Sequence record: MZ443769.1
Length of the DNA: 64,000 nucleotides
Reading direction: 5' to 3' (one strand)
The notes under the pieces were generated by a model that was not told the origin of the DNA, did no database searches, and saw only the letters and a program-made list of their open reading frames with translations. The first letter of the stretch is position 1. Each line of letters opens with the position of its first letter. Position numbers and translations under genes: made by a program. Positions 12,641 to 32,544 of the stretch are shown piece by piece.

Positions 12641-13411
12641 ATGAGCAATGTAGATAAAACAATGCCTCAAGGTAAGTGGGAATTCAACGAGCCTGTTGCT
12701 GCTGTGTTTGATAACATGCTGGCCAACTCGATTCCTTCTTATGACCGTATGCGTGACCTGACGTTTCGTCTGGGTAAACGTTTCGTGACACCTGGCTCAG
12801 CGATTGTTGATCTCGGTGCATCACTCGGTCGTGCTATCGAACCATTCTGTGAACACTTCGGTCCGTACATGTATCATCATGCAGCAGACCGTCCTGAACC
12901 AGATTCTGAAACAGGCAATCTCTATTCGCTGTATGAGACTGCTCCTGCAATGCGTGAGCGTCTCGCACAGAACGCAGTGTTGAACGCAGCCGAAGCGAAA
13001 CTCGAATCAGAATCGCTTGTGGACGTTGATACGTTCCGTTTCAGTGAGCAAGTCGAATGCTCTTTGATTCTCAGCGTGTTAACTTTGCAGTTCACTCCGA
13101 TTGAACACCGTCAGCACATTCTGGAAAAGGTCTATGACTCTTTGCAGTCTGGTGGTGCATTCATTCTCGTTGAGAAAGTTCTCGGGGATGATAATTATCT
13201 GGACAAGCTGCTGGTAGATACCTACTACAGCATGAAAGGTGATAACGGTTATTCACAAGAAAGCATTGCGACTAAGCGCAAGTCACTCGAAGGTGTTCTC
13301 GTTCCAGTGAAAGCCGCGTGGAATGAAGAACTGCTCCGTAAAGCGGGCTTCAATCGCGTCGAATGTTTCTATCGCGATCTCAACTTTGCAGGTTGGATTG
13401 CTGTTAAATAA
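12641..13411 (+). CDS. cmoA: carboxy-S-adenosyl-L-methionine synthase (CmoA family)
   Basis: WEFNEPVAAVFDNMLANSIPSY, VDLGASLG, LTLQF, GGAFILVEK, NGYSQESIATKRKSLE and LLRKAGF...FYRDLNF align along the full length with CmoA. Confidence 0.9.
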   Translation: MSNVDKTMPQGKWEFNEPVAAVFDNMLANSIPSYDRMRDLTFRLGKRFVTPGSAIVDLGASLGRAIEPFCEHFGPYMYHHAADRPEPDSETGNLYSLYETAPAMRERLAQNAVLNAAEAKLESESLVDVDTFRFSEQVECSLILSVLTLQFTPIEHRQHILEKVYDSLQSGGAFILVEKVLGDDNYLDKLLVDTYYSMKGDNGYSQESIATKRKSLEGVLVPVKAAWNEELLRKAGFNRVECFYRDLNFAGWIAVK

Positions 13412-13436: not shown

Positions 13437-14309
13437 ATGAGTTCTACAGCGGTCATACGCGAGAAAGTTCGCTCGGCATTATTTGCGAGTCATAACAAGC
13501 CTGTCGATATGCGACAAGCGTTGATGGACACTTTGAGTTGGATTCCGAAAGAAGACCAAGTTACTGTGTTCATGTCGGGTGGCATTGATAGTCATGCTTG
13601 CTTGTTTGCTTGCATCGACCTCGGCCTCAAAGTTAACGTGCTGTCGTTCACACTCGACTCACACGAAAGCTCTGACTTCAAGGCAGCGAGACACGCAGCC
13701 GAAGTTTTCGACCTTGACTTCACGCCGATCGTTCTTCCAACGAACGAAGCCCATCTGAAAAGCTGGGTACGTTTCGCAGTACACAAGCTCGGGCTCACGA
13801 ACAAAAGTGAGATCGAATGTTCTTGGCCGCTGTACACCGCAATCCGTCATCTCGAAGGAAAGACCAAACATATCGTACTCGGTCTTGGCGGCGACTCGTA
13901 CTTCTTAATGGCAAAGAGCGCTTCGATGCACTGCAAAGACTTAGTGTTAGAGCAACGTCGAAAAGCTACGCGCCGTGTGCTGTCTCAGAACGTTCTCGTT
14001 AAGCGTGAAGCTTTTGCTCGTGGTATCTACGCGCATCTTCCGTACTTCGAGTTCGGCCGCACTTACGCAGAGCTGCAAATGGAAACCGACTTTAAAAAGA
14101 TCAACAGTCCGCAGAAGTCGTTTTACAATCAGGCATTCCCTGAGTATCGCAAGCGCTGTAAAGTACGCGGTCACCAAAACTTCCAGCTGGGAGACACTAA
14201 CATTAGCGGCATCTTTAGCGATGTGTTGTTGAAGTCCGACTGGAACACAAGAAACTTGAAAGCAATCGTTGGCGTATACAATGACGTTGCATCAGGAATC
14301 TGTAAATAG
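13437..14309 (+). CDS. asparagine-synthetase-like ATP-dependent amide ligase lacking the glutaminase domain
   Basis: PP-loop FMSGGIDS, SDFKAARHAA, IVLGLGGDSYF; 290 aa with no N-terminal Ntn domain. Confidence 0.82.
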   Translation: MSSTAVIREKVRSALFASHNKPVDMRQALMDTLSWIPKEDQVTVFMSGGIDSHACLFACIDLGLKVNVLSFTLDSHESSDFKAARHAAEVFDLDFTPIVLPTNEAHLKSWVRFAVHKLGLTNKSEIECSWPLYTAIRHLEGKTKHIVLGLGGDSYFLMAKSASMHCKDLVLEQRRKATRRVLSQNVLVKREAFARGIYAHLPYFEFGRTYAELQMETDFKKINSPQKSFYNQAFPEYRKRCKVRGHQNFQLGDTNISGIFSDVLLKSDWNTRNLKAIVGVYNDVASGICK

Positions 14310-14316
14310 TAATTTG
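14299..14316 (+). promoter_or_regulatory. overlapping motif I (TCTGTAAATA) and motif II (TAGTAATTTG) upstream of the DPA peptide
   Basis: Both recurring motifs overlap about 60-77 nt before ATG 14376. Confidence 0.6.
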
Positions 14317-14375
14317 AGTAAGCACTGATAATCAGTCTGCTCTTAACATAAACCCAAATCCTTAAGGAGCGCATC

Positions 14376-14525
14376 ATGCGTCATACCGACCCAGCAGTAC
14401 GTTTTAACGATCCAGCCATCACTGACCCAGCAGCCCGTTTCGATCCGGCCGACCCTGCTGATCCAGCAATCGGTTTCGATCCGGCTGACCCAGCAGATCC
14501 TGCTGACCCGGCTGCTCGCTTCTAA
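14376..14525 (+). CDS. 49-aa Asp-Pro-Ala repeat peptide (absent from ORF track)
   Basis: AAGGAG RBS at 14364; MRHTDPAVRFNDPAITDPAARFDPADPADPAIGFDPADPADPADPAARF; synonymous codons vary between repeats; terminator follows. Confidence 0.85.
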   Translation: MRHTDPAVRFNDPAITDPAARFDPADPADPAIGFDPADPADPADPAARF

Positions 14526-14541
14526 TAGCGAAACTTAATAC

Positions 14542-14571
14542 AAGGGGGCTGCTCATTGCAGTCCCTTTTTA
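14542..14571 (+). terminator. intrinsic terminator after the DPA peptide
   Basis: GGGGCTGC-TCATT-GCAGTCCC then TTTTT. Confidence 0.8.
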
Positions 14572-14593
14572 CTTTCCTGTTGAGGAACGTGCT

Positions 14594-15232
14594 ATGTCTT
14601 TTGAGCTTGTAAACATTCTGCCGATACTGTCGCAATCAACTACAGTTCATCGTGCAGCCGACGGCACTGATGTTCACATCGTCCGAAACTTCTTCACACA
14701 TACGGAATGCGAAGCACTAATCGCTGAGGGCATTCAGTATCTCGAACCGAGCCGTGTTGGTGGACCGAACGATACAACTAAGATCGATAAAACAGTTCGC
14801 TCGTCCTCTACTGCGATGTTAAGCGAAGTATCTCAACACCCTGCTGTACTCGAAGCTATTCGTCGCATTGATGACGCATACGGTTACCCACATCTGTTCA
14901 GCAACCCGCTGCAACTCAATCGCTATCAAGTCGGTGAAGAGTTCGTAGCGCATCACGACTGGCATGACCCTGTTCGCCAGCATGATCGTATTCAACGTGA
15001 AGGCCAACGCACTTGGACCTTCTTGATGTACCTCAACGATGACTTCGAAGGAGGTCAGACTGAATTCCCGTTGATGGATCTCACAGTAACTCCTGAGCGC
15101 GGTATGCTTGTTCTGTGGAACAACTTGCTTGTTGACGGTTCAGTCAATGAGACAACGCTACACGCATCGAAGCCTGTAACGTCAGGTACGAAGTTCATGA
15201 TGACCAAGTGGTTTAAGAACAAAGTGCTGTGA
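14594..15232 (+). CDS. 2OG-Fe(II) oxygenase, prolyl-4-hydroxylase family
   Basis: FFTHTECEALI, VRSSSTAML, LQLNRYQVGEEFVAHHD (HxD), TFLMYLND..EGGQTEFP, TLHASKPVTSGTKFMMTKW. Confidence 0.9.
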   Translation: MSFELVNILPILSQSTTVHRAADGTDVHIVRNFFTHTECEALIAEGIQYLEPSRVGGPNDTTKIDKTVRSSSTAMLSEVSQHPAVLEAIRRIDDAYGYPHLFSNPLQLNRYQVGEEFVAHHDWHDPVRQHDRIQREGQRTWTFLMYLNDDFEGGQTEFPLMDLTVTPERGMLVLWNNLLVDGSVNETTLHASKPVTSGTKFMMTKWFKNKVL

Positions 15233-18607: not shown

Positions 18608-19450
18608 ATGACAGCAATAAGCCCAATCCGATATCAAGGAAATAAGCGCAGCCTAATACCCTTGATTTTAGAGAACGCTCCTTCTGTTAAGGACTGTTCT
18701 CGTTTCATTGATGCGTTCGGCGGTAGTGGTACTGTCTGCTTGAATATGCCTCAACCGTTTCGCGTGTACAACGAACTCAGTCCTCAGGTATTTGAGATCG
18801 TCAAGATGCTGTCAGAGCAAGACCCGAAGAAAACTCTGTCGCAGATTAAGCGTGTTGTGAAACACTGGGCGCTGACGAACAGTAGTGAAACGAGTTACGA
18901 CGACTTCCGTGTTCACGTCCAGAAGAAGCGTACCCCGTTACTGCATTACGTTGCACACAGACACTCACACTCCAACATGTTGCGCTTCAATCAGCAAGGC
19001 ATATACAATGTGCCATTCGGTGCTCGTGGTCTGATTGGAAAGTTCGATGAACTTGAGCATGAGCTTGTGCAATTCCATGAGCGTATGCAAGGTGTGCATC
19101 TGACTAACCTGCGCTACAATGACTTGCTGGGTAAAGTGCATAACCAGCTTAACAGCAACACGTTCTGCTACTTCGACCCACCGTATCTGGCAAGTGGTGC
19201 AATGCAATACGGGAAGTGGACTGAGCGCAACGAGCGTAACCTGCTTTCGATGCTGGAACATCTGACTCGCCTTGGCGTTCCGTGGATGTTGAGCAACGTT
19301 GTCGAGCACAGACACTTCAAGAACGATTTGTTGAAACGTTGGTTGAAACGTTGTGCAACGACCGTGCTCTATCCGAATAAAACATACGCACTGGCAAATG
19401 GTCAAGGCGGTTCACACGGTACTGTTGAAATTTTAGCAATGAACTATTAA
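18608..19450 (+). CDS. dam: DNA adenine methyltransferase (Dam/T4-Dam family)
   Basis: SPIRYQGNKRSL, FIDAFGGSGTV, FCYFDPPY. Confidence 0.9.
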   Translation: MTAISPIRYQGNKRSLIPLILENAPSVKDCSRFIDAFGGSGTVCLNMPQPFRVYNELSPQVFEIVKMLSEQDPKKTLSQIKRVVKHWALTNSSETSYDDFRVHVQKKRTPLLHYVAHRHSHSNMLRFNQQGIYNVPFGARGLIGKFDELEHELVQFHERMQGVHLTNLRYNDLLGKVHNQLNSNTFCYFDPPYLASGAMQYGKWTERNERNLLSMLEHLTRLGVPWMLSNVVEHRHFKNDLLKRWLKRCATTVLYPNKTYALANGQGGSHGTVEILAMNY

Positions 19451-29708: not shown

Positions 29709-30413
29709 ATGGCAAAAATTGCTAAAGCAAAAGCAAAGGACGGGAAAAAGAAAGGCGCTATGGCTATTGATTTGAAATCTTTCAAGTCGGCTAAACAGCT
29801 TAAAGGCGCTAAGTACAATCCACGTTTCATTACAGACAGTCGCTTGAGCGCACTCGAAAGTTCGTTGGGTAGCTTCGGTGACTTGTCTGGCATCGTGTTT
29901 AACAACAGCGTCAGTTCAGGCGTTCTTATCTCCGGTCACCAGCGTCTCAAGTCAATCAACGATTGGGAAACGCGCATCGAACTCCAGCCTACTTCTGACA
30001 AGTACGGTACAGTCGCTTTGGGTTACGTTCATGCAACGCATCCGAAGTCGAGCAAGACGATTAGCATTCCTCTGCGTATCGTAAACTGGAACGATAAGAA
30101 AGCCGAGTACGCTGCGAACATTGCTGCGAATGCGCACGGCGGTGAGTTCGATAACAAGAAGCTTGCGAATCTGGTTGAGAAACTTGACCTGACTTCTATC
30201 AAGCCTCAACTGCTCGGACTCGACCCGCTGGAAATCCGTGGTCTGCAACAGAAGCTGAAATCACAAGCACTTGTTGAAGGCGAGAAACGCGCAGGCAAAA
30301 CTACTGGTCAGATGAACGGTAGTACGGGCGCATTCAAAGAATACACACCAGATGAAGTCGGCGATAAGCTGTCATGCACCTGCCCACGCTGTGGATTTAA
30401 GTTCGAGGGATAA
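29709..30413 (+). CDS. ParB/Srx-like N-terminal domain protein with C-terminal Zn knuckle
   Basis: LKGAKYNPRFI..LESSL..FG..LISGHQRL..ANIAAN; ends CTCPRCGFKF. Confidence 0.8.
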   Translation: MAKIAKAKAKDGKKKGAMAIDLKSFKSAKQLKGAKYNPRFITDSRLSALESSLGSFGDLSGIVFNNSVSSGVLISGHQRLKSINDWETRIELQPTSDKYGTVALGYVHATHPKSSKTISIPLRIVNWNDKKAEYAANIAANAHGGEFDNKKLANLVEKLDLTSIKPQLLGLDPLEIRGLQQKLKSQALVEGEKRAGKTTGQMNGSTGAFKEYTPDEVGDKLSCTCPRCGFKFEG

Positions 30414-30414
30414 T

Positions 30415-32544
30415 ATGATCATCAAGCCGCCTACAATGAAAGAGATCAACGCGCAAGACAACAATTGGCGTGGCATGAGCTTCTTCGCAGGCTGTGGTGG
30501 TTCTTCTACCGGTCTCAAATGGGCCGGTATTAACATCATCTTGAGTAATGAGTTCGTAGACGTGGCGCGTGAGTCTTATCAAGCGAACCACCCATCTACG
30601 TTAGTTCTCCCTCACGATATCCGTCGTCTCGACCCGAAGAAGATTATGCAGCACTTCGGGATGGGTAAGGGTGAACTTGATTTCCTCGATGGTAGCCCAC
30701 CATGCTTCACTGAGAACACTCTGATTCACACTGCTGAGGGGATGAAGTTCATCTCTGATGTTAATGTCGGCGACATGGCAATGACTTCTGTTGGTCGTTA
30801 TCATGAAGTGTACGATACTATGGTGCGTCCTTATGTTGGTACGATGCACAAGATCGAAACACTGCTCGGCGCGAATAACGCAACGCCTGAACATCCGTTC
30901 TTCATTCGCCGCGTTCAACCTACCGGCTTGTGGTCTGAACCTTTCTGGTGTGATGCGAAAGATGTACAAGAAGGTGATTTACTCTCAACACCTCGAACAA
31001 CTCCTGACATGGGTGCTGACGCTTATCATGGTCAAATGTCATTGCTGACGCCTGTCATTCAGAGCTGGGTAACTTTCCCTGAGTTCTGGTGGGCTATCGG
31101 TCATTGGTGTGCGCACGGTACTCTTGAAGTTGTGCAGGGTGTCGATGTTGTTAGCTTCGAATCGCACACAGCTCAGGAAAACGATCTGATTGAGCAGGTG
31201 TTTGATGTTCTGAAAATCAGTAGCATCAACAGCGTAGACACAACCGTTGACCAGCGCAAGACGTATCGCGTTGTCATGGATTCAGAACTGTTTGCGTTCC
31301 TGAGCAAGTTCGTGGCACAGGGTAAGAACAACCTGTCTCGTCGTCTGCCGTCGATGATCTTCCACTTAGCTACTGAACTGAAACAGCAATTCATTCTCGG
31401 CTATCTCGGTCGTGACTACGTTAGTGCAATGGGCATGAGCCAGTTGATTAGCACAGACAACCGTCGCTTCCTCACTGAAATGAATTACCTGACGTGCTCT
31501 GCATTCAACAGACCTCTGTTCGATGGTATGTTGTTCTCTGATGTGAACTACGGTTCAGCGCTTACGCCTCGTGATCGCAATCAGAAGAAAGAGCATGTCG
31601 GCTATCTGCTGCTGCAAGATGAAAACAATTTCTTCTACGAGTTCAACGATAACGATCCACATCTGTGGGTTCAAGTGATTGAGAACCTAGCGTATCAGAC
31701 AACCTGTGACGTGTACAACTTCTCGGTCAGTGAAGACGAGACGTATGTGGCGAACAGCATTGTCGTGCATAACTGCAAAGGCTTCTCGACTGCTGGCGTG
31801 AAAGAAGAAGGTTGGGGTAAAGAAGTCAAGTACAGCGAGAACAAGAAACAGCAGGTTGATGACCTGTTCGATCAGTATTGCCGTATGATTAGTGGCTTCC
31901 AGCCTAAAGTGTTCACAGCGGAAAACGTCAGTGGTCTTGTGAAAGGATCTTCTAAAGGTTACTTCCTTGAGATCATGAAAACGTTTGACGAGCTTGGCTA
32001 CTATGTCAAAGCACCGTTGATTAACAGTGCATGGCTTGGTGTTCCACAGTCGCGTGAGCGTATCATCTTCATGGGTGTGCGTAAAGACGTTGCACATGCG
32101 TTGGGATATCGCTCAATCGGTACTGCTGTGCCTGCTGTCGTGCCTGCTTCAAGCATGGCTGTGCTTGCTGATGCTCTGCCTAACATCCTGCGATACAAAT
32201 CGGCTGAGAAAGATATCATCAAGTATAAGCCCGCGATGAACGGACCTATGCCTACGATAACTGCTGCTGATGCGATTGCGTATGAGACGGCACGATTCTC
32301 TTCTGCTGGATTTATCGAGGACAACAAGGGCATTCGTCGTAAGCTTACGATTGATGAACTGAAAGTTGTTTCCGGTCTGCCTGCTGATTACAAGCTGGTC
32401 GGTAAGTTCGAACAACAGTGGGAACGTCTCGGTCGTATCTGCGTACCTCACATGACTCATGCTGCTGCGACTGCGTTGATCAATCATATTCTTGTGCCTT
32501 ACGCCAAGAAGAAGAAACAGAAACCGGGCGCTCTCTTCCGCTAG
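30415..32544 (+). CDS. C5 cytosine transferase (DNMT fold), intein-containing; candidate carboxymethyltransferase (CmoX-like)
   Basis: Motif I FFAGCGG, IV GSPP|C, VI ENVSGL, VIII VPQSRERI, IX RKLTIDEL, X LGRICVP (Arg instead of Asn); ATG at 30415 follows the ParB stop. Confidence 0.88.
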   Translation: MIIKPPTMKEINAQDNNWRGMSFFAGCGGSSTGLKWAGINIILSNEFVDVARESYQANHPSTLVLPHDIRRLDPKKIMQHFGMGKGELDFLDGSPPCFTENTLIHTAEGMKFISDVNVGDMAMTSVGRYHEVYDTMVRPYVGTMHKIETLLGANNATPEHPFFIRRVQPTGLWSEPFWCDAKDVQEGDLLSTPRTTPDMGADAYHGQMSLLTPVIQSWVTFPEFWWAIGHWCAHGTLEVVQGVDVVSFESHTAQENDLIEQVFDVLKISSINSVDTTVDQRKTYRVVMDSELFAFLSKFVAQGKNNLSRRLPSMIFHLATELKQQFILGYLGRDYVSAMGMSQLISTDNRRFLTEMNYLTCSAFNRPLFDGMLFSDVNYGSALTPRDRNQKKEHVGYLLLQDENNFFYEFNDNDPHLWVQVIENLAYQTTCDVYNFSVSEDETYVANSIVVHNCKGFSTAGVKEEGWGKEVKYSENKKQQVDDLFDQYCRMISGFQPKVFTAENVSGLVKGSSKGYFLEIMKTFDELGYYVKAPLINSAWLGVPQSRERIIFMGVRKDVAHALGYRSIGTAVPAVVPASSMAVLADALPNILRYKSAEKDIIKYKPAMNGPMPTITAADAIAYETARFSSAGFIEDNKGIRRKLTIDELKVVSGLPADYKLVGKFEQQWERLGRICVPHMTHAAATALINHILVPYAKKKKQKPGALFR
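30703..31773 (+). mobile_element. 357-aa intein with degenerate LAGLIDADG endonuclease, inserted before the catalytic Cys
   Basis: Starts CFTENTLI, block B ATPEHPF, ends ANSIVVHN with +1 Cys; blocks C and E read AIGHWCAHG and FILGYLGRD. Confidence 0.93.

Follow-up and report, generated by a model that had tools for sequence, protein, structure and literature searches.

A gene for a CmoY-type ligase, a micro-ORF encoding an acidic proline-repeat peptide and a gene for a collagen-type prolyl 4-hydroxylase (P4H) form a unit that is kept in 13 phage lineages through four arrangements relative to CmoA and CmoX. This new observation suggests that the hypermodification of phage DNA draws on, or is accompanied by, a ribosomal peptide. 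The window in which the unit was read (64,000 nt, bases 1-64000 of the Erwinia jumbo phage pEp_SNUABM_52; Table 1) is 99% identical to phage vB_EamM_Y3, in which the small ORF is annotated as Y3_019. Among the explanations weighed here, the one placed first, as a working preference that falls somewhat short of probable, is that this conserved phage-specific module would be a peptide-dependent branch of the CmoA/CmoX 5-carboxymethylcytosine (5cxmC) pathway, in which a peptide-derived amine is joined to 5cxmC-DNA.

Table 1. Features of the module and of its CmoA/CmoX context in the window.
Feature	Position	Strand	Remarks
CmoA homologue (carboxy-SAM synthase), upstream neighbour of the module	12641..13411	+	TIGR00740, phrog_4752
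ATP-dependent amide ligase, 290 aa	13437..14309	+	divergent CmoY clade, Asn-synthetase synthetase-domain fold
Promoter-like motif CTGTAAATA(..TAATTT)	14300..14315	+	76 nt upstream of the micro-ORF
Shine-Dalgarno AAGGAG of the micro-ORF	14364..14369	+	direct sequence reading; 6 nt 5' of ATG
49-aa acidic proline-repeat micropeptide, ten D-P-A units, net charge -6	14376..14525	+	
Intrinsic terminator, 11-bp stem + T run	14542..14573	+	between the micro-ORF and the P4H gene
Collagen-type peptidyl prolyl 4-hydroxylase, 2OG/Fe(II) oxygenase, 212 aa	14594..15232	+	PF13640
CmoX candidate, C5-cytosine methyltransferase homologue with intein	30352..32544	+	PF00145 + intein/Hint matches

The three ORFs, which the first-pass annotation had read as consecutive genes, do follow one another on the + strand, and the idea that they make up a genuine functional unit is borne out by their conservation, since they are contiguous and in the same order in all 13 lineages (ligase identity 56-100%). 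The order CmoX-ligase-peptide-P4H-CmoA is found in L013, L014, L113 and L114, CmoX-(chorismate mutase)-CmoA-ligase-peptide-P4H in L015, L115 and L119, CmoA-ligase-peptide-P4H in the window, Yoloswag and L116, and RecA-ligase-peptide-P4H in L112, L117 and L118. The module lies inside CmoX/CmoA clusters in 10 of the 13 lineages, and its placement between these two genes in four of them makes a role outside the CmoA/CmoX pathway hard to argue. All the instances come from related jumbo phages, and the synteny may be partly a matter of plain inheritance.

The unit has also been lost or replaced in part. In L120 the P4H gene is gone and the micro-ORF is down to 8 codons, with the MRN start, the Shine-Dalgarno sequence and the terminator retained beside an intact ligase and cmoA, and in L023 and L111 a DUF1611 gene stands in place of the peptide and P4H. 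In these three lineages ligases of the clade persist with cmoA in the absence of P4H, a point that weighs against the preferred reading. The Salmonella phage Sen-NF was considered as a case in which the ligase gene abuts the P4H gene, with neither peptide nor CmoA, and was rejected. Its GenBank record is a head-to-tail concatenation of coding sequences from which the intergenic DNA is absent, and L112, a real contig whose ligase is 99.7% identical to that of Sen-NF, carries the micro-ORF between ligase and P4H, so that Sen-NF is not a counter-example. Purpose-built HMMs found no CmoA or CmoX in the Sen-NF-like sequence (29 kb contiguous, and the 108-kb record), which also counts against the preferred reading; these genomes are incomplete, since their polymerase places the phages in the Y3 jumbo-phage group of approximately 260 kb.

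The micro-ORF is a real coding ORF rather than a chance DNA repeat, given its Shine-Dalgarno sequence and its terminator with an 11-bp stem (14542-14568), the restriction of the variation among its ten DPA units to synonymous changes at third codon positions, and the presence of homologous micro-ORFs at the same place in 12 further lineages. The expected frequency of DPA in the window is 1.5e-4 per position, and repeats of this type were found in no other ORF of the 64 kb. A Shine-Dalgarno sequence equivalent to AAGGAG precedes the micro-ORF in 13/13 lineages, and hairpins of -14 to -24 kcal/mol occupy the terminator position in 13/13. The window holds ten copies of the motif CTGTAAATA, all of them on the + strand, against 0.43 expected; the longer form is present there in a single copy and recurs 5' of the micro-ORF in Yoloswag, L116, L120 and L121.

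The peptide was described in the first-pass annotation as having 10 Asp and 10 Pro, a count that is exact, and all of these residues lie within the ten D-P-A units. Depending on the lineage, the repeat unit is DPA, DPE, NPEI, APEI or EPE, and the sole constants across the 13 lineages are Pro and one flanking acidic residue, which may come before or after it. The second-best conserved part is the N-terminus, M-[R/K/N/F]-[N/K/H/T]. All the module peptides are strongly acidic (net charge -3 to -10), a conserved Lys is absent from them, and that of L119 lacks basic residues altogether.

A short ORF rich in one residue, followed by a terminator and then a gene, is the classic layout of an attenuator, and the micro-ORF could be taken as a regulatory leader peptide in which the speed of the ribosome on the Pro codons controls the downstream terminator, and through it P4H expression, and the peptide itself is functionless. 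This explanation is very improbable. In folding calculations, codon-shuffled ORFs pair with the 5' arm of the terminator as stably as the real ORF does in 12 of the 13 lineages, and this pairing is much less stable than the terminator; the residues that flank Pro are restricted, which implies constraint at the level of the peptide; the enzyme groups with peptidyl P4Hs and not with free-proline hydroxylases; and Rfam holds no family that matches the region.

The oxygenase has the double-stranded beta-helix domain (PF13640, E-value 1.6e-15), and its residues H120, D122, H190 and K200 (the HxD...H iron ligands and the 2OG-binding Lys) do not vary among 12 P4Hs of the module. The solved structures closest to it all belong to peptidyl enzymes, namely those of Bacillus anthracis (1e-23), human C-P4H, Chlamydomonas and PBCV-1; among the PDB matches (3ITQ/5HV0, the Bacillus enzyme; 7ZSC; 2JIG; and 5C5T, the PBCV-1 enzyme, at 9e-13) there is no free-proline hydroxylase. 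A candidate substrate, the micro-ORF peptide, is encoded 69 nt upstream. The natural reading, well supported by the comparison of lineages, is that P4H acts on the prolines of this peptide, as the first-pass annotation had supposed, because Pro is the only invariant residue of the repeats in the 13 lineages and peptide and P4H were lost jointly in L120.

Several substrates may be considered for the ligase. Lasso cyclases belong to the Asn-synthetase fold, as do enzymes such as the beta-lactam and carbapenam synthetases, which activate Asp-type carboxylates by adenylation and close amide bonds within one molecule. On these grounds one may envisage a pathway confined to the peptide, in which the ligase would adenylate peptide carboxylates (Asp/Glu side chains or the C-terminus) and amidate them or close a macrolactam, P4H would hydroxylate Pro, and the product would be a free modified peptide, DNA not being a ligase substrate. 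The Asp side chain is chemically equal to the carboxymethyl group that serves as the handle in 5cxmC, one acidic residue is kept beside Pro in every repeat unit, and the Sen-NF-like loci carry the module with no CmoA/CmoX nearby. In the broad sense of the term RiPP, the locus does hold a short ribosomal precursor gene adjoining potential modifying enzymes, co-conserved in 13 lineages.

Nevertheless, such a peptide-only pathway is distinctly unlikely. The first-pass annotation had put Asp at the centre of the ligase chemistry, a view that the comparison of lineages does not support: Asn, Ala or Glu take the place of Asp at position -1, and the acid moves between -1 and +1 of Pro, so that amidation or cyclisation of a defined Asp side chain fits poorly. 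Its caution that no canonical lasso pathway is visible was well founded, since a leader peptidase, an RRE, a lasso-cyclase match and a leader/core layout are all absent. Specifically, no Pfam match to a leader peptidase (B, transglutaminase-like) or an RRE (PqqD-like) was found among the ten neighbouring proteins, and both are also absent from the called genes of the related loci; the lasso precursor layout was not found, as there is no leader and the first acidic residue lies at position 4-7 of the whole ORF, whereas a lasso ring is closed by an Asp/Glu at position 7-9 of the core; and the lasso cyclase model of NCBIfam gave no match for the ligase, which showed only weak matches to AsnB, QueC and LarE. 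Further points against confinement to the peptide are the location of the module within the CmoX/CmoA clusters, the invariance of the catalytic motifs common to the ligase and SpCmoY, and the persistence of the ligase with cmoA where the peptide decayed (L120).

The window contains the genes by which a 5cxmC system is recognised, that is, a CmoA homologue, a CmoX candidate and an SpCmoY-homologous ligase adjoining CmoA. In Synechococcus phage S-B43, CmoA, CmoY and CmoX produce 5-glycylcarboxymethylcytosine (Yang et al., Nat Commun 2025, PMC12783734). The CmoA homologue of the window is 28% identical to the characterised CmoA of S-B43 and matches phrog_4752 with an E-value of 4e-82 and TIGR00740 with 2.4e-41, the latter under the equivalog cut-off. 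CmoX enzymes have been sought by an SPPC motif together with an Arg equivalent to R350 of SpCmoX (PMC12783734), and the candidate found 16 kb downstream of the module (PF00145, 8e-38) was aligned with SpCmoX and seven homologues. The equivalent Arg is present, an intein of 357 aa (nt 30703-31773) interrupts the SPP|C motif exactly before the catalytic Cys, and motif X reads GR in place of the usual GN, as in SpCmoX.

As for the ligase itself, its matches in Pfam to Asn_synthase (PF00733) and QueC (PF06508) are weak but over the cut-off. It has the PP-loop SGGIDS, it is devoid of a glutaminase domain, and its AlphaFold model (pLDDT 93) matches the fold of the synthetase domains of AsnB, beta-lactam synthetase and carbapenam synthetase (CarA). 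It is 27% identical to SpCmoY over 266 aa (E 2e-21 in the pairwise comparison, and 4e-14 when searched against the whole phage database), and the PP-loop and the KSxxEC, PQK and HQxFQ motifs are invariant and common to both. SpCmoY ligates glycine to 5cxmC in phage DNA, an activity that requires no peptide (PMC12783734). In the tree, the module ligases form one clade with a support of 100/100 and a stem branch of 2.39 substitutions/site, and the peptide-less CmoY of PaBG, AD1 and S-B43 fall outside it. The long stem is consistent with a change of substrate, and the separate, long-branched clade suggests that the pocket of these ligases may differ from the glycine-carboxylate pocket of the SpCmoY cluster. 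The ligases have isoelectric points of approximately 9-10, a value that is no guide as to whether DNA or an acidic peptide is the substrate.

The first-pass annotation had asked which of the two, cmoA or the peptide, the ligase accompanies across genomes, and the answer is both, at different levels. The wider ligase family (AD1/Alexandra type, PaBG and S-B43) goes with cmoA/cmoX, the peptide being absent, while the ligase's own clade goes with peptide and P4H in 13 of its 15 members, still inside cmoA/cmoX clusters. For this reason the attachment of peptide material to carboxymethylated DNA, the second option of that annotation, is now ranked first.

The same distribution may be looked at in another way, as two functions that travel together: an ordinary CmoY would join a small amine (glycine, ammonia or another) to 5cxmC-DNA, and the micro-ORF and P4H would form a separate unit. 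This unit would yield a free acidic peptide rich in hydroxyproline, which might serve, for instance, as a polyproline-II DNA mimic or in anti-defence. A division of this kind agrees with the independence of SpCmoY from any peptide, with the CmoY homologues of AD1, PaBG, S-B43, L023 and L111 that stand beside cmoA without one, with the retention of ligase and cmoA in L120 after the loss of P4H, with a promoter-like motif and a transcript common to peptide and P4H that start after the ligase gene, and with the strong acidity of every module peptide. We consider it rather unlikely, however, because peptide and P4H were never found away from the ligase clade in IMG/VR, the phage database, 185,579 bacterial and archaeal genomes and a large protein set, because contiguity survives four rearrangements, one of them a move beside RecA, and because the long ligase stem coincides with the presence of the peptide.

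If the preferred, peptide-dependent 5cxmC pathway operates, its first steps would be those expected from homology to the characterised S-B43 enzymes, in which CmoA makes carboxy-SAM and the intein-containing CmoX transfers a carboxymethyl group onto C5 of cytosine in phage DNA. Transcription of the micro-ORF would start at its own promoter-like motif and its strong Shine-Dalgarno sequence would direct translation, and the P4H gene would be read on the same transcript through a leaky terminator, so that the peptide would be expected in excess over P4H. The enzyme would then hydroxylate the prolines of the [D/N/A/E]-P-[A/E] repeats, as its family membership, the invariant Pro and the joint loss suggest. 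Finally, the divergent CmoY ligase would adenylate the 5cxmC carboxylate, as SpCmoY does, and would take its amine from the hydroxylated peptide instead of from glycine, leaving a peptide-type amide adduct on DNA; this outcome is the least certain step and purely conjectural. The donor could be the N-terminal alpha-amine of the peptide or the N-terminus of a short X-Hyp-containing fragment cut from the repeats. As there is no conserved Lys, and in L119 no basic residue, the N-terminus is the only universal amine of the peptides, and it would need deformylation, a point against this reading.

In its fullest form, with a multi-copy RiPP-like proline-repeat precursor that is hydroxylated by P4H and joined, whole or as X-Hyp fragments, to 5cxmC by the CmoY-clade ligase, the proposal is doubtful, although worth keeping in sight. 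The modification density in S-B43 is 10% of C. At that density, a whole peptide of 3-5 kDa would raise the packaged mass by roughly a third, which argues against a whole-peptide adduct; a protease able to make fragments is absent from the module, which argues against a fragment adduct.

Wider searches delimit the distribution of the module. In IMG/VR the F-DPADPAD coding pattern is confined to module loci, save for three further matches that lie within high-GC ORFs and were dismissed as chance. In a set of 5.8 billion proteins, close P4H homologues occur on contigs equal in size to those of the ligase matches. The genome-contig scan found no member of the ligase clade in bacterial genomes; for P4H it returned 48 bacterial loci with identities of 37% or less, near which there is no similar peptide, ligase or CmoA. 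A scan of metagenome contigs with the alignment of the ligase clade gave one locus (48%), of the peptide-less type. Two other candidates were discarded. In L028, the (EPV)10 small ORF that lies close to a distant P4H proved to be a (GST)n repeat of a larger gene read on the opposite strand, and the 46 (P-E-I-x) repeat loci obtained from IMG/VR in a DNA-pattern scan are unrelated linker-type repeats, the module genes being absent from them, so that acidic Pro repeats alone are not diagnostic.

Among known systems, the closest is that of S-B43, with which the present locus has in common clustered phage genes for CmoA, for a methyltransferase homologue with SPPC and the carboxylate-binding Arg, and for a glutaminase-less Asn-synthetase-like ligase; the ligases align over their full length and have invariant motifs in common. 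In S-B43, by contrast, the micro-ORF and P4H are absent and the amine is free glycine, whereas the present ligase falls in a long-branched clade of its own and CmoX bears an intein and lies 16 kb off. The text that describes the S-B43 system makes no mention of an oxygenase, a substrate peptide or Erwinia phages (PMC12783734). The P4H of the Chlorella virus PBCV-1 is likewise a virus-encoded, small, monomeric enzyme of the same family, and its substrates are virus-encoded short tandem Pro repeats, with Pro followed by Ala preferred. Unlike the present phages, PBCV-1 is a eukaryotic virus, its substrate repeats lie inside larger proteins, and it has no dedicated micropeptide gene, ligase or link to DNA modification. 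Lasso biosynthesis is similar in that the gene of an ATP-dependent enzyme of the Asn-synthetase fold adjoins that of a short ribosomal peptide with Asp/Glu; the module differs from it in the absence of B protease, RRE and leader, in an acidic residue that varies in position and identity, and in that the nearest characterised relative of its ligase is the DNA-modifying CmoY.

A further parallel is the peptide-carboxymethyl-cytidine 'Trojan horse' microcin C-like antibiotic of Bacillus amyloliquefaciens (reference 24 of PMC12783734). The likeness is that one pathway brings together a peptide of ribosomal origin, a cytosine base and the chemistry of carboxy-SAM. The C-terminus of the antibiotic peptide is reportedly joined to the nucleotide by a ThiF-like MccB enzyme, and the target is said to be a free nucleotide, not DNA, with no Asn-synthetase-like ligase or P4H involved.

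The module provides a concrete, genetically encoded candidate partner for one clade of CmoY-type ligases. The 5cxmC pathway was first described in late 2025 (PMC12783734). A peptide or peptide fragment on DNA, if confirmed, would be a new chemical class of phage DNA hypermodification and the first instance of a DNA base hypermodified with a peptide (or hydroxyproline-peptide), as well as the first use of a ribosomal peptide as amine donor for nucleic-acid modification, with consequences for the evasion of restriction and CRISPR and for enzymatic DNA-peptide conjugation. Should the product be instead a free acidic peptide rich in hydroxyproline, the module would supply the first substrate identified for a bacteriophage P4H, and possibly a new anti-defence DNA mimic. 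In either case the module offers a testable example for the many unexplained phage 2OG-Fe(II) oxygenases, and all its components are small and expressible in E. coli.

The window comprises bases 1-64000 of pEp_SNUABM_52, a jumbo phage of Erwinia that is 99% identical to vB_EamM_Y3 (genus Sasquatchvirus). The first-pass annotation had described an Asn-synthetase-like gene, a peptide with 10 Asp and 10 Pro and a prolyl 4-hydroxylase (P4H) in consecutive order, and all three reading frames are indeed where it placed them. The matches of the ligase to Asn_synthase and QueC are weak, yet above both cut-offs; its confidently predicted structure (pLDDT 93) can be overlaid on those of the AsnB, beta-lactam synthetase, carbapenam synthetase and human ASNS synthetase domains, and the protein contains no glutaminase domain. 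Every one of the best solved relatives of the oxygenase is a peptidyl prolyl 4-hydroxylase (Bacillus anthracis, 1e-23; human C-P4H; Chlamydomonas; PBCV-1), and by homology the enzyme is clearly of the peptidyl type.

Features of the window and of related phage loci (L-numbers)
Feature	Position	Strand	Remarks
Ligase, 290 aa	13437-14309	+	Asn_synthase/QueC matches; PP-loop SGGIDS; AsnB-type fold
Micro-ORF, 49 aa	14376-14525	+	Exactly ten D-P-A units
Terminator	14542-14568		Between micro-ORF and oxygenase gene; 11-bp stem, T-tailed
Oxygenase (P4H), 212 aa	14594-15232	+	PF13640, 2OG-Fe(II) oxygenase
CTGTAAATA sites	7820, 10452, 14300, 15285, 15661, 18581, 29666, 34960, 38688, 43018	+	Probable promoter element
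Dam-type methylase	18608-19450
Thymidylate-synthase homologue, 366 aa	26646-27746		PF00303, 1e-55
CmoX candidate	30352-32544		C5-methyltransferase homologue; SPPC motif and R350-equivalent Arg
Intein in CmoX candidate, 357 aa	about 30703-31773
RecA-like gene, ~820 aa	L112:2485-4953, L117:2497-4959, L118:2482-4965		Upstream of relocated module
Chorismate mutase, type II	L115:3718-4161		PF01817; between CmoX and CmoA; 293-kb phage contig
DUF1611 protein	L002:5847-6902, L023:3899-4975		P-loop and Rossmann-like domains; between CmoA and ligase

Synechococcus phage S-B43 makes 5-carboxymethylcytosine (5cxmC) by means of CmoA, a carboxy-SAM synthase, and CmoX, a C5-methyltransferase homologue, and its Asn-synthetase homologue CmoY ligates glycine to the carboxyl group of this base (PMC12783734, December 2025). 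According to the same work, there must be ligase clusters whose amines are unknown. The window ligase aligns with the S-B43 enzyme, SpCmoY, along its whole length (27% identity, E 2e-21) and is, by this homology, a divergent CmoY; a CmoA homologue lies directly upstream of its gene, and the CmoX candidate has both features that define CmoX in PMC12783734. An intein interrupts the candidate immediately in front of the catalytic Cys of its SPPC motif (SPP / C...HN / CKGF); the CmoX homologue of L015 (765 aa) also seems to bear one, and none is present in the other homologues compared (L006 PaBG, L007 S-B43, L013, L023, L113, L114, L115, L119). The ligase, its neighbour and the CmoX candidate thus indicate, by homology, that the CmoA/CmoX/CmoY background pathway is present, and by all sequence features tested the locus is a member of this kind of system. 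The published system, however, lacks the micro-ORF and the P4H that the window locus has, and the text of PMC12783734 refers to no oxygenase, hydroxylase or substrate peptide; judged from sequence, what is new is a conserved ligase–micro-ORF–P4H unit.

The D-P-A units account for the Asp and Pro content of the peptide. This tripeptide has an expected frequency of 1.5e-4 per position in the window, and no other ORF in the 64 kb resembles the micro-ORF. Codons differ among the units, and all the differences are at third positions. An AAGGAG Shine-Dalgarno site sits 6 nt 5' of the ATG, and 76 nt upstream of the micro-ORF lies one of the 10 copies of CTGTAAATA in the window (0.43 expected), whose excess, restriction to one strand and location, mostly shortly upstream of gene starts, mark it as a probable promoter element in this group of phages. 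A longer form, CTGTAAA..TAATTT, occurs once in the window and again upstream of homologous micro-ORFs. These occupy the same place in 12 other lineages, each with a Shine-Dalgarno site and a downstream hairpin (-14 to -24 kcal/mol), and the signals as a whole establish, at the level of sequence, a coding and separately expressed micro-ORF. That it is instead an attenuator leader is highly improbable, given that this model did not pass a folding test and that no Rfam family matches the region. The Y3 peptide differs in one residue outside the repeats, Ile4 (L001:6386-6388) instead of Thr4 (14385-14387).

Searches of the phage database, IMG/VR, a 5.8-billion-protein set and the contigs encoding its matches recovered the ligase, micro-ORF and P4H in this order in 13 lineages (ligase identity 56-100%): the window and Y3; L116; Yoloswag (L004); L121; L117, L118 and L112; L013 and L014; L119; L113; L114; L015; and L115. 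The internal order is kept while the surroundings vary: the module lies between CmoX and CmoA (L013, L014, L113, L114), after CmoX–CmoA (L015, L115, L119), after CmoA (Erwinia phages) or beside an intein-bearing RecA (Sen-NF-like contigs; the insertion in the Sen-NF gene is intein-like). In a maximum-likelihood tree the module ligases group in one clade (100/100 support) whose stem measures 2.39 substitutions per site; the CmoY homologues of PaBG, AD1 and S-B43, which come without a peptide, fall outside it. Ligase and P4H identities correlate across lineages (Spearman 0.59), in the large protein set the contigs with close P4H homologues have the same lengths as those of the ligase matches, and within IMG/VR the F-DPADPAD coding pattern is confined to module loci. 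The ligase clade is absent from all bacterial and archaeal species genomes searched, and bacterial P4H homologues reach at most 37% identity and have no module-type neighbours. These comparisons establish the module as a real and conserved unit. The chorismate mutase of L115 would make prephenate, the CmoA co-substrate, so that this phage may boost its carboxy-SAM supply.

The lineages nearest to the window share D-P-A as their repeat unit; elsewhere it is D-P-E (L119), N-P-E-I (L113), A-P-E-I (L114), E-P-E (L015) and N-P-E(-R) (L115). The micropeptides (5 to 11 units, 22 to 54 aa) are all strongly acidic (net charge -3 to -10); they share no conserved Lys, and one lacks basic residues altogether. 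Only Pro and one adjoining acidic residue, before or after it, are invariant, Asp being dispensable, and the next best conserved part is the N-terminal M-[R/K/N/F]-[N/K/H/T]. The invariance of Pro is the pattern expected of a P4H substrate. The viral P4H of PBCV-1 has a reported preference for Pro followed by Ala, and in PBCV-1, as in the window locus, P4H and Pro repeats are both viral; the P4H probably hydroxylates the repeat prolines of the micropeptide. The proposal that the ligase amidates or cyclises the Asp residues of the peptide fares worse: the acidic residue shifts from one side of Pro to the other and Asp is replaceable, which fits poorly with a ligase activating one defined Asp side chain, and a pathway confined to the peptide, with the ligase modifying its carboxylates, is accordingly quite unlikely. 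The earlier doubt about a canonical lasso pathway was justified, as there is no leader peptidase or RRE gene nearby, no leader-plus-core precursor and no match to the lasso-cyclase family.

Whether the ligase tracks with cmoA or with the peptide, a question raised by the first-pass annotation, has a divided answer. The module clade goes with peptide and P4H in 13 lineages; in L120 the ligase (58%) adjoins cmoA, the P4H gene is absent and the micro-ORF has shrunk to eight codons, retaining its MRN start, Shine-Dalgarno site and terminator. The decay of peptide and P4H thus goes hand in hand, and the ligase outlasts them beside cmoA. An alternative into which this survival would fit, though an unlikely one, is that the ligase works as a usual CmoY on small amines, with peptide and P4H as an independent free-peptide unit. 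L023 and L111 (ligase 48%) have neither peptide nor P4H; there and also in the AD1/Alexandra type, which is more distant, a DUF1611 protein stands between CmoA and the ligase, whereas in module phages peptide and P4H follow the ligase. The ligase thus has two alternative partners, and the DUF1611 protein may be an alternative accessory for its step.

The abutting ligase and P4H genes of Salmonella phage Sen-NF were rejected as a peptide-less exception, since its 'complete genome' (PV359490.1; L005, L008-L010; 108.5 kb) consists of CDSs joined head to tail, with no intergenic DNA between them. By its polymerase Sen-NF belongs with the ~260-kb jumbo phages of the Y3/Yoloswag group, so that its record is no reliable guide to small genes or to which genes adjoin; a genuine contig whose ligase is 99.7% identical carries the micro-ORF between ligase and P4H. 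CmoA and CmoX were found neither in the 29 kb around the module of a Sen-NF-like contig nor in the 108-kb record, which, for genomes of ~260 kb, does not establish their absence.

The reading ranked first, and held tentatively, is that the ligase would still adenylate 5cxmC on DNA and would take a peptide-derived amine. It is preferred because the module lies inside CmoX/CmoA clusters, in four lineages between both genes, and because the appearance of the peptide coincides with a sharp divergence of the ligase clade; tandem units and a leaky terminator would suit a precursor made in bulk. Its weaknesses are that the N-terminus is the sole universal amine, that a whole peptide would be bulky if 10% of C were modified, as in S-B43, that the module encodes no protease and that the L120 ligase manages without P4H. 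The locus might, though this is rather doubtful, represent the first peptide-type hypermodification of a DNA base. The thymidylate-synthase homologue of the window exceeds the 266-position Pfam model by about 100 aa; it could represent an enzyme of the pyrimidine hydroxymethylase type and a second DNA-modification route.
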